A stretch of 63,208 nucleotides of DNA, the filler included, from Octopus bimaculoides (taxonomy: Eukaryota): assembly GCF_001194135.2 (NCBI RefSeq). It is 4 parts of 3 records of this genome, joined end to end, with 100 filler letters (N's around TTAATTAATTAA, not from the genome) between each part and the next. Parts side by side here need not be neighbours in the genome. Positions count along the whole stretch, not along the records: positions 37,002 to 58,893 come from NC_069008.1; 3 more parts are not named here. One strand, written 5' to 3'. The notes beneath the pieces are model-generated. The model made no database searches. It was not told where the DNA came from and saw nothing but the letters and a program-made list of their open reading frames with translations. This document shows, one piece after another, positions 48,752 through 50,631 of the stretch. The translations under genes and the position numbers were made by a program. The stretch's first letter is position 1; each line of letters opens with the position of its first letter.

Positions 48752-50598
48752 TTAATCTTTTTCATAATTCACTTTGATTGTTACATTTGCAAAATATGAC
48801 CTCGTTTTTGGTATTAGTGTTATGAAGTATTTCCCCAATTTTGGATGCCTAATCGAAAGCAGTTGGTCCGTTCCGGGCTGGCTTGATCGCCATTTTGTCA
48901 AATGTTTGGAGCACCGACTTCTTTTATAGCAAGCATAAAGATCTACTTCTCCGATTCCAGCAAAAGTAATGATTTTCACTTTCTTCAATGACACCGTTTT
49001 GACATTGAGTTTAAACAGGATTTTCTCTCCAGGAACTGAACTCAGCCCCTCAATTACTGAGTTCTCGTGAATGTTACGGATGTACTGAGATATATCGCAG
49101 ACTTCGATGCCCACTTTTGCAAAAGATTCTTGTACAGGAGCTGTATCATAGCCAAGATCATAAGCGGACTTTATGATGTCACAAGCAGCCTCCGTGAAGT
49201 TGGTTTTTGGATGCCAGTAGAAACGGTTGCTGTGTGCTGTCATCTGGAATACTTTCCTAACACTCCAGTCTTTATAACTGGCCAACAGACAGTAGAACCG
49301 GTTGAATACTCCGCTGAGGTAGTGTACATCCATATCATCGGAGAAGTCTTTAGCGTATATGACTGATTTACCATCCTCTGATTGTTTACAAAGTTTGCGT
49401 ATTGGATCTTTGCTGACACCCCCTCCGGCTTCCCAGTCATTGTTTCCTTTTGCAAAGTTTTCGGCTGCCTCTCCAGCCAGGTCACTGAAAGATTCGTCGA
49501 TGCCCCCCGACTGACCTTCGTACACCAAGTCTGAATGTTCTTCTGTGAAGCAGTGTGTCACTTCATGTGCAACGATGTCGAGACCGACAAGAGGCAGGAA
49601 GCTGTCGTCGCCGTCACTAAACGTGAAGTTCCGTCCATTGTAGTTAGCTACGACAGTGTTGTGTCCATAGTGCACACGAAAGATCATAGGCAACACTTTC
49701 TTCGGAGGTACTTTCACCCATTCCATGTACATATTGTAGATGATGGTACCATAGAAAAGAGCATCGTTTATCGGGGAATAAGCACCATTTATTTCATCCC
49801 TTGAACCATTCTTGCAGTTGGTATGATAAGTTTTTTCATCCTCATCGGACAGATACTCCTTTCCTTTCAGATTCACGACTATCACAATGCCATTGCGGAA
49901 ATAGCAGTCTTCTCCAGTGCGTCTCACTTGCAAATAAGGTAGCAATTCCCCATACGTTTTTTTACCTATCAACTTGTTGCCTCCTATACCTTTCATCTGA
50001 TATTTCTCTCTTGCAGTTTCTAGTGTGTTCCATTTGTCTACAAGCATTCCATTCTTTGCATTGATCATCATGCAAAATCGATAATTTTTTCCATCAGACA
50101 CAGCGAAATATTGAACTCGATAAACCAGGATTCCGATATTGTCCTTCACATAGATTATCAACTGAGGTTTGCTGCTGTCTATGCGGGCCCCTGCCATAGG
50201 AAATTTGCCATACATCAGAGCCAATTGTACAGCTTCCTGTTCAGTCACATTTGGTATTGTAGAGTTGATGTCATCATCAAGGTTCTGAACCAGTTTACCT
50301 GTCACCTGGCCAGTGTACACATGGCTTTTGGCGTCCGTCTCCACAGTGAGGCTGGCATCAAACACTGGAAGTCCTCGATAAGTTTCGTGGTACTTTTTGA
50401 TGTCTGTTCCTTGTACGCTTGGTGCTGAATCCGTTAGTTCGACATCCTCGTCTTTGGTCAGACCAAACAGGTCACGTGTGGTAATCATGTGACTTGGCTG
50501 TCGCTTCACCATCTCACTCAGGGTCCCCACGTTTGACAGGAACACGTCCCTCGCCTCTCGCCATTTCGCCGACATCACACAATGGCTCTCCAGGAACG
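48752..50598 (-). CDS. M4-family (thermolysin/vibriolysin/LasB-like) zinc metalloprotease, main coding exon; N-terminal exon not located
   Basis: Open frame of about 615 codons with FTP (KYHETYRGLPVF), PepSY (LVYRVQYF..INAKNG), M4 catalytic (NGAYSPIND, HEVTH 49553-49567, GGIDESFSD, DVHY) and C-terminal PPC-like domains. It is preceded by a (CT)n tract and AG acceptor at 50600-50599 (phase 1). Confidence 0.93.
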
Positions 50599-50631
50599 CT
50601 AGAGAGAGAGAGAAAGAGGAAGATAACAATG

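Follow-up and report, generated by a model that had tools for sequence, protein, structure and literature searches.

A two-exon vibriolysin-type protease gene of Octopus bimaculoides, very probably descended from an ancient transfer from a bacterium to a mollusc

We examined a 63,208-nucleotide stretch of Octopus bimaculoides DNA (RefSeq assembly GCF_001194135.2; 4 parts of 3 records joined end to end, filler included; hereafter the window). The part taken from NC_069008.1 (positions 37,002 to 58,893) carries, on the minus strand, a gene for a predicted secreted zinc metalloprotease of the M4 family. We consider it very probable that this is a functional two-exon nuclear octopus gene and that it goes back to a single ancient transfer from a bacterium to a mollusc. 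An initial annotation, made from the sequence alone, had proposed horizontal acquisition from bacteria, and this proposal is supported here: every named eukaryotic relative among the matches listed is a mollusc, and the next matches are marine gammaproteobacterial vibriolysins.

The transferred gene is already known, both from Liu et al. 2018 (PMC6011040) and from the RefSeq annotation, where the family appears as "elastase", "neutral protease" or "virulence metalloprotease-like". Liu et al. 2018 described seven horizontally acquired Zn-metalloproteinases (ZnMP1-7) in O. bimaculoides as ancient transfers, with maximum-likelihood and neighbour-joining (NJ) trees in which they nest within bacteria, a codon-usage analysis, and PCR on hepatopancreas cDNA (PMC6011040). 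For ZnMP2 (XP_014774680.1), the two published primers have perfect matches in the window, at 50434-50417 and 49910-49891, and the reported 544-nt product shares 98.7% identity with the window and 90.0% with Octopus sinensis; the window gene is therefore most probably ZnMP2, with the same primers, product and interpretation and nothing substantive to set the two apart. Two others of the seven, ZnMP1 and ZnMP7, are the counterparts of the paralogues P0003 and P0004. What is added to the published account (PMC6011040) is exon 1, the phase of the intron and its conservation across classes and paralogues, the ratios of nonsynonymous to synonymous substitution (dN/dS), a structure model, and lineage-specific Cys pairs.

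Gene structure and splicing

The open reading frame (ORF) listing gives an uninterrupted frame at 48752..50650 (-), of 632 codons if counted from TTG, and the part of it that constitutes exon 2 (48752-50598) is intact, as the initial annotation had stated. The phase-1 acceptor that it had recognized was also found as described, with (CT)n-AG at 50600-50599 and exon 2 starting at 50598, in a context of a SINE-like (short interspersed nuclear element-like) repeat followed by ttcctctttctctctctctctAG/CG (a slash marks a junction here and below). Its claim that the ORF lacks a signal peptide or leader of its own needs correction. A script scan over 8 kb upstream for ATG-led hydrophobic peptides ending at a phase-1 GT donor returned, besides microsatellite noise, a single exon 1 candidate with a consensus donor, at 54329-54281, and the final 9-10 residues of the signal peptide come from exon 2. 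The exon 1 peptide, MAICRVGVLFLFLVIF, agrees with the start of the annotated O. sinensis protein, MATCRVGVLLLFLVIL, and the identical exon 1 junction was recovered in the O. sinensis locus (L001). Splicing gives a coding sequence (CDS) of 1896 nt and a protein of 631 aa, equal in length to the O. sinensis orthologue P0001. The coordinates of all features are collected in Table 1.

Exon 1 and the first 10 codons of exon 2 together read as a classical signal peptide. MAICRVGVLFLFLVIF would provide its n- and h-regions, and the full predicted signal peptide is MAICRVGVLFLFLVIFAFLESHCVMS/AKW, with cleavage predicted at VMS/AKW by the -3/-1 rule; in the AlphaFold2 (AF2) model described below, this region forms a helix at residues 6-19 followed by a low-confidence stretch. 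The 3682-nt intron thus splits the signal peptide instead of following it. The initial annotation had pictured a bacterial gene fitted with a eukaryotic signal-peptide exon, of which the upstream exon joined through a phase-1 intron stands; the fitting itself does not follow, as insertion of an intron into a pre-existing leader is equally possible. Exon 1 may equally have been captured or be part of an original bacterial leader into which the intron was inserted. A candidate TATAAGG lies about 150 nt upstream of the ATG.

Table 1. Features of the gene and its surroundings, with positions counted along the window
Feature	Position	Strand	Details
Exon 1, coding part	54281..54329	-	ATG-led, 16 codons + 1 nt; encodes MAICRVGVLFLFLVIF; donor G/GTGAGT next
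Intron, phase 1	50599..54280	-	3682 nt; GC 0.376; rich in interspersed repeats and microsatellites
Exon 2	48752..50598	-	2 nt + 614 codons + TAA; signal-peptide end, pro-domain, catalytic domain, C-terminal domain
Signal peptide, C-terminal part (predicted)	50570..50598	-	A17-S26, AFLESHCVMS; last 9-10 residues, from exon 2
Pro-domain, aa 27-215	50003..50569	-	FTP motif and PepSY-like fold; aligns to LasB propeptide
Catalytic M4 domain, aa 216-517	49097..50002	-	PF01447 and PF02868
C-terminal beta-sandwich domain, aa 518-631	48755..49096	-	Divergent PPC (pre-peptidase C-terminal) at fold level
Zinc motif HEVTH (H361, E362, H365)	49553..49567	-	Translation check
Third zinc ligand E385	49493-49495	-	20 residues after second His
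Catalytic H442	49322-49324	-	Counterpart of thermolysin His231 / LasB His223
C192	50074-50072		Pro-domain, in NYRFCMMI
C366	49552-49550		Directly after zinc ligand His365, HEVTHC
C420	~49390-49388		Pairs by covariation with C453
C453	~49291-49289		Pairs by covariation with C420
C573/C579	~48931-48911		PPC-like domain, in YACYKRSRCSK
ZnMP2 cDNA amplicon (Liu et al. 2018, PMC6011040)	49891..50434	-	Octopus hepatopancreas
Candidate polyadenylation signal AATAAA	48732..48737	-	15 nt past stop; from sequence
SINE-like repeat	50615..50870	-	Abuts acceptor polypyrimidine tract
Further SINE-like copies	51344-51480, 51724-51970, 51983-52230, 53117-53192
C2H2 zinc-finger ORF, 249 aa	38383-39132	-	Tandem 84-nt finger repeats
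C2H2 zinc-finger ORF, 400 aa	45884-47086	+	Tandem 84-nt finger repeats; 91% to 381-aa gene adjoining O. sinensis orthologue

Several contigs from Logan were considered as transcripts or as intronless copies and rejected. Contig L005, from a relative with 88% protein identity, holds the end of the intron and the SINE and is genomic, and the cuttlefish-like contigs L006-L009, which terminate in (CA)n, are likewise genomic. These cuttlefish-like contigs contain a continuous 624-aa ORF in genomic DNA (e.g., L006 492-2366), but an intronless gene was also rejected, as an acceptor (ttattttcag/TG) lies at the position of the octopus intron. Upstream of this acceptor the members of the cluster differ completely (P0008 vs P0219), and the N-terminus called on the cuttlefish contigs is probably read-through of the 3' end of the intron.

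Two further observations concern 5' ends in other cephalopods. The S. pharaonis annotation P0217 begins at an internal Met, and exon 1 is unannotated in decapodiforms. Three Logan contigs (L015, L016 and L017, from SRR20545813, SRR29271477 and SRR19578104) encode an identical 650-aa paralogue, P0422, of the group B defined below, from another cephalopod; they have identical CDS and 3' regions and three 5' leaders which diverge 4-6 nt before the ATG, and may stem from a transcript with alternative 5' exons or from chimeric assembly.

Integration of the locus in the octopus genome

By BLASTN against the P0001 locus, collinearity of the 20-kb window piece with O. sinensis chromosome CM016888.1 (15 Mb) extends over about 19 kb, from about 39.2 kb to 57.5 kb, with order and orientation kept and with the zinc-finger neighbour and the intron included. 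Nucleotide identity is 90% over exon 2 and its flanks, 91% for the zinc-finger neighbour, 76% for the exon 1 region, and 75-87% for intron and intergenic blocks. The O. sinensis orthologue on this chromosome, annotated as an "elastase", has 90% protein identity, 631 aa, two exons, the same phase-1 junction and the same zinc-finger neighbour; it differs by a synonymous distance (dS) of 0.33 and by its longer intron (about 6.2 kb vs 3.7 kb in the window). A third octopus species, represented by the genomic contig L005, shares both the acceptor and the SINE adjacent to it. The intron contains at least five copies of an interspersed repeat of about 250 nt in both orientations (families D4-D7, inverted pairs I1-I6), and the same repeat has many copies in O. 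sinensis L001. These copies and two C2H2 zinc-finger ORFs bear out the earlier description of host SINEs and a host zinc-finger gene around the ORF.

Bacterial contamination or mis-assembly, by which a bacterial ORF would have been joined to octopus sequence, could have accounted for the fully bacterial domain layout and for the 31-38% identity to proteins of Vibrio, Pseudoalteromonas and similar bacteria. The synteny across independent assemblies has already refuted it, and we assign it practically no probability. The acceptor and SINE recur in the third species, the spliceosomal intron is accompanied by an exon 1 that is conserved, the genomes of 185,579 prokaryotic species reach at most 44% identity to the eukaryotic clade tested, and the published PCR supports a host origin (PMC6011040). 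The view of the initial annotation that contamination is unlikely is therefore upheld.

Other sequence features of the region were noted. Another family of interspersed repeats, with copies of about 190-250 nt, occurs at 42585-42786, 47111-47309, 52781-53031 and 58076-58287, with at least five copies in O. sinensis L001 (near 2711, 5453, 18756, 20660 and 27705). Dense microsatellites, namely (TCTA)n, (TA)n, (TG)n, (CT)n and a CTG/Leu-like run, surround exon 1 at 53470-55800, and an N gap lies inside this tract at 55453-55487. A scan of the region against Rfam gave no above-threshold match; the sub-threshold matches to miRNA models (mir-297, mir-466 and mir-3149) all fall on (TG/TA)n microsatellites and were discarded as low-complexity artefacts.

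Distribution, phylogeny and the shared intron

Homologues were sampled by three homologue searches (best 120-150 matches), one exhaustive representative search, and three cluster look-ups. The family is present in cephalopods (O. sinensis, O. bimaculoides, O. vulgaris, Argonauta and Acanthosepion), bivalves (Ylistrum, Pecten, Mizuhopecten, Pinctada, Ostrea, Tegillarca and Mercenaria), gastropods (Pomacea, Batillaria, Babylonia, five Haliotis species and Patella) and the chiton Liolophura. The next-best named matches are to Vibrio, Photobacterium, Pseudoalteromonas, Shewanella, Moritella, Microbulbifer, Zooshikella and Spartinivicinus, in which the same FTP-PepSY-M4-PPC order is found.

A phylogeny was run as an NJ tree with Kimura distances (406 sequences, 422 columns, 100 bootstraps). 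All 34 named molluscs fit into a clade of 85 members, the smallest to hold them, from which named bacteria are absent, and all 29 named bacteria fall outside the mollusc-holding clade in 91/100 bootstraps; the named outgroups are all Proteobacteria. Within the clade, group A (98% support) unites cephalopods and bivalves and includes the window protein, while group B is multi-class, with chiton, cephalopods, bivalves and gastropods. Group B also takes in no fewer than three other M4 genes of O. sinensis (P0418, P0419 and P0438), which lie on chromosome CM016869.1 (L014; 77.5 Mb), each with an exon 1 coding length of 49 nt, as in the window gene.

A third set, group X, consists of 19 cluster representatives which come from unannotated assemblies of the European Nucleotide Archive (ENA), bear no organism names, and fall inside the mollusc clade (P0250, P0257, P0276, P0290, P0300, P0318, P0320, P0338, P0343, P0350, P0354, P0357, P0361, P0457, P0460, P0483, P0493, P0509 and P0515). 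They are M4 proteins of 600-790 aa on contigs of up to 3.7 Mb, with three paralogues on a single 1.19-Mb contig, and their N-termini resemble translated polypyrimidine tracts followed by a conserved motif, GAR[RK][VI]D. In the scan of 185,579 prokaryotic species' genomes nothing exceeded 44% identity to group X, which is therefore not a sequenced bacterium. Among the unnamed members of the 85-member clade, those that were inspected are eukaryotic: in L002-L004 the ORF is immediately preceded by splice acceptors and microsatellites, and these contigs have an intron near residue 170 in common with Pomacea.

An argument independent of the tree comes from the intron. Its position was measured as the number of residues from the split codon to the conserved pro-domain Ala (AKW / AQW / AYRVD / AQVID), and for exact junctions the spliced translation was required to equal the annotated protein. 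A phase-1 intron lies nine residues from this Ala in the window gene, in the O. sinensis group A gene (intron of about 6.2 kb), in Argonauta (about 4.7 kb), in the O. sinensis group-B paralogue P0418 (exon 1 of 49 nt) and in Haliotis P0086, and eight residues from it, again in phase 1, in Pomacea. As this phase-1 intron is common to paralogue groups and classes, it argues for a single eukaryotic ancestor gene, and so for an acquisition before the split of the molluscan classes concerned. The age that the initial annotation had left between cephalopod-specific and older in molluscs is accordingly settled in favour of the latter: the family is old and pan-molluscan, and its paralogue groups, at least two in number, are old as well.

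The history that we propose would begin with a stem mollusc receiving a vibriolysin-type gene, in a single event, from a marine proteobacterium, probably a gammaproteobacterium. A phase-1 intron would then have arisen in the signal-peptide region, and duplication, still ahead of the separation of the molluscan classes, would have given rise to two or more paralogue groups. Further duplication within Octopus would have led to the seven ZnMP genes of O. bimaculoides.

Protein architecture and proposed activity

Judged by its sequence, the product is a 631-aa predicted secreted pre-pro-zinc-endopeptidase of MEROPS family M4, vibriolysin/pseudolysin subfamily. The FTP-PepSY-M4-PPC architecture named in the initial annotation is real, although its parts are seen at different levels. 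Pfam detects Peptidase_M4 (PF01447; 3.8e-16, 60.3 bits vs a gathering cutoff of 22.4) and Peptidase_M4_C (PF02868; 1.2e-24, 87.5 bits vs 24.4). FTP is borderline against its cutoff of 21, with 19.5 bits in the whole protein and 21.6 bits (E=1.9e-4) in the excised pro-region. No Pfam match was obtained for PepSY, and PPC (PF04151) reached E=0.19 and 13 bits vs a cutoff of 25.9; both are visible at fold level only. The C-terminal domain is colinear with bacterial PPC in our alignment A1.

An AF2 model built from a 15-sequence alignment has a mean predicted local distance difference test score (pLDDT) of 82.9 and a predicted template modelling score (pTM) of 0.87, and the modelled catalytic domain has the two-lobed thermolysin fold. 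Foldseek searches with the pro-domain retrieved the MCP-02 propeptide (3nqz_A; E=5.7e-12, TM-score TMt 0.75) and the PepSY domain of YpeB (5boi). With the catalytic domain, PlM4P (7ecc) and MCP-02 (3nqx) were retrieved at TMt 0.89-0.90 and 40-42% identity, LasB (1ezm) at TMt 0.86, and thermolysin at TMt 0.72-0.75. The C-terminal 114 residues retrieved the PPC domain of Bacillus anthracis collagenase (5sv5; E=1.8e-4, TMt 0.71) and the collagen-binding domain of ColG.

Translation and alignment confirmed each of the catalytic features listed in the initial annotation. The HEVTH, E385 and H442 columns, aligned to the LasB residues, are invariant or nearly so in alignments A1 and A2. A pairwise HMMER alignment places D357, D389, E393, E396 and D404 as equivalents of the LasB calcium ligands, with D357, E393, E396 and D404 aligned to the LasB calcium site Asp136, Glu172, Glu175 and Asp183. 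C248, C278, C489 and C517 align to LasB Cys 30/58 and 270/297, and in a multi-group alignment they occur in all mollusc groups and nearly all sampled bacteria; two LasB-type disulfides, C248-C278 and C489-C517, are predicted from these positions.

The best solved relative is LasB (pro-elastase) of Pseudomonas aeruginosa, with E=1e-80 over residues 55-517 of the window protein, pro-domain included. Across LasB, vibriolysin MCP-02 and PlM4P (1ezm, 8cr4, 3nqx and 7ecc) the catalytic domains have 37-42% identity and TM 0.86-0.90, and the HExxH motif, the Glu 20 residues on, the catalytic His, the calcium ligands and both disulfide positions all match the octopus protein. LasB lacks a PPC domain, whereas vibriolysins have one. 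Unlike these bacterial genes, the octopus gene is nuclear and has a spliceosomal intron and a eukaryotic-style signal peptide, and its product has extra Cys pairs. Thermolysin and bacillolysin from Bacillus share family, fold and mechanism but are more distant (97 bits vs 275 for LasB against the window protein, 24-26% identity), with no disulfides and different calcium sites.

By analogy with LasB, vibriolysin MCP-02 and thermolysin, the protein would enter the secretory pathway and be secreted co-translationally. The pro-domain of M4 zymogens acts as both an intramolecular chaperone and an inhibitor, and here, too, it would aid folding and keep the enzyme inhibited until autoprocessing near residue 215; the linker at 213-236, which has a pLDDT below 50 in the AF2 model, is the proposed autoprocessing region. 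A mature neutral zinc metalloendopeptidase of about 34 kDa would then be released, cleaving before large hydrophobic residues, and the PPC domain may be trimmed or may help in substrate binding.

The extra Cys residues are lineage-specific. C420 and C453 form a co-varying pair which defines group A (cephalopods and bivalves) and is a candidate third disulfide; these positions are Asp/Glu and Tyr in group B and most bacteria, and a Dyella "pseudolysin" (P0147) has both Cys. C573 and C579 occur in octopods and not in cuttlefish, bivalves or bacteria, and probably form a small disulfide loop. C366 is present in all cephalopod group-A proteins and also in three bivalve-group sequences, the position being Gly in bacteria and most other molluscs, and C192 is found in cephalopods only. 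C192 and C366 could link the pro-domain to the active site. A fuller scenario would place a single transfer, dated by the intron, at the stem of Mollusca (or of a wider lophotrochozoan group, should group X be non-molluscan), followed by a re-engineering of latency in cephalopods in which C192 and C366 might lock the pro-domain to the active site, covalently or in the manner of a cysteine switch. We regard this scenario as unlikely, and we know of no counterpart to such a lock in bacterial M4 zymogens.

Selection and expression

The dN/dS comparison suggested by the initial annotation was run by the method of Nei and Gojobori (NG86). Between the window and O. sinensis the ratio is 0.136 (dS 0.33), and comparisons with the third octopus species give 0.120 and 0.103; values stay below 0.2 in each of three domains, and there are zero indels over 631 codons in the three species. 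Strong purifying selection (dN/dS 0.10-0.14) and the lack of indels among three species argue that the gene is functional. The hepatopancreas cDNA points, if weakly, to a role in extracellular digestion (the amplicon lies in one exon and comes from one tissue), and a role in defence is possible.

A decaying or non-enzymatic relic, that is, a pseudogene or a catalytically dead homologue, is extremely unlikely given the intact frame and these ratios; every catalytic, zinc and calcium residue is kept as well, and a cDNA product has been reported (PMC6011040). What can be said for such a relic is that the cephalopod Cys366 beside the zinc ligand His365 might alter catalysis, and that activity and substrate are predicted from sequence.

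Points against a single bacterial transfer and other origins

This last consideration belongs with a number of others that weigh against a functional gene derived from one bacterial transfer. The published amplicon lies wholly within exon 2 and proves neither splicing nor the absence of genomic DNA carry-over, and no exon 1-exon 2 spliced transcript was seen among the Logan short contigs checked. The phase-1 intron of the group A gene of the scallop Ylistrum lies two residues, rather than eight or nine, from the conserved Ala. GC content at third codon positions is 0.47, compared with 0.33-0.37 in the neighbouring zinc-finger genes, a difference that is uninformative at such an age. In the tree, which is distance-based, the exact mollusc clade has 49/100 support, support along the backbone is weak, and the donor lineage cannot be pinned down. 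Finally, with group X inside the clade and without an organism label, a restriction to molluscs is not proven.

Part of these points bear on several independent transfers from bacteria to molluscs, for example of groups A and B separately. Besides the support of 49/100 for the exact clade, the join of group A to the remaining clade is weak (23-62), and molluscs live with vibrios and Pseudoalteromonas which carry such genes. Against this, groups A and B and the basal Haliotis clade have the phase-1 intron in the same position, a post-signal motif (A-x-R-V-D-A or GAR[RK][VI]D) is shared by several groups and is not found in the bacterial sequences of A1, and the clade is free of named bacteria in 91/100 bootstraps. 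We therefore hold several transfers to be very unlikely.

Vertical inheritance would require an M4 gene of an early eukaryote or animal that was lost almost everywhere outside molluscs. The family is indeed old and broad in Mollusca, with conserved introns and several paralogue groups, and the eukaryotic group X falls in the same clade; both facts must be added to the points raised above, and with listings of the best 120-150 matches other phyla could be missed. Nevertheless, no named non-mollusc eukaryote is among the matches listed, and the named matches just below the molluscs are all proteobacteria. The window protein, being nearer to LasB than to Bacillus thermolysin (275 vs 97 bits), lies inside the proteobacterial M4 branch; the mollusc proteins keep a PPC-like C-terminal domain, as in the bacteria, and the distance separating them from LasB and vibriolysin is smaller than that between the latter two and the thermolysin of Firmicutes, so that they appear nested within the bacterial proteins rather than sister to them. 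Under the filter of Liu et al. 2018, no homologues were found in 95 protist, fungal, plant and vertebrate genomes (PMC6011040). Vertical inheritance is thus distinctly unlikely, and a single ancient transfer to a mollusc remains the origin that we favour.

Significance

To our knowledge, transfers from bacteria to animals that have given rise to working secreted enzymes are few and often disputed. The present locus is an unusually clean case, in which an intact four-domain bacterial protease comes with a spliceosomal intron, synteny, purifying selection and a phylum-wide multigene family. Its value is that of a well-documented positive control, and the conserved intron and lineage-specific Cys pairs could serve to date the transfer and prompt experiments. 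For molluscs, it indicates that a bacterial enzyme of virulence or nutrition can turn into a stable part of an animal's toolkit, in this case probably a digestive one.

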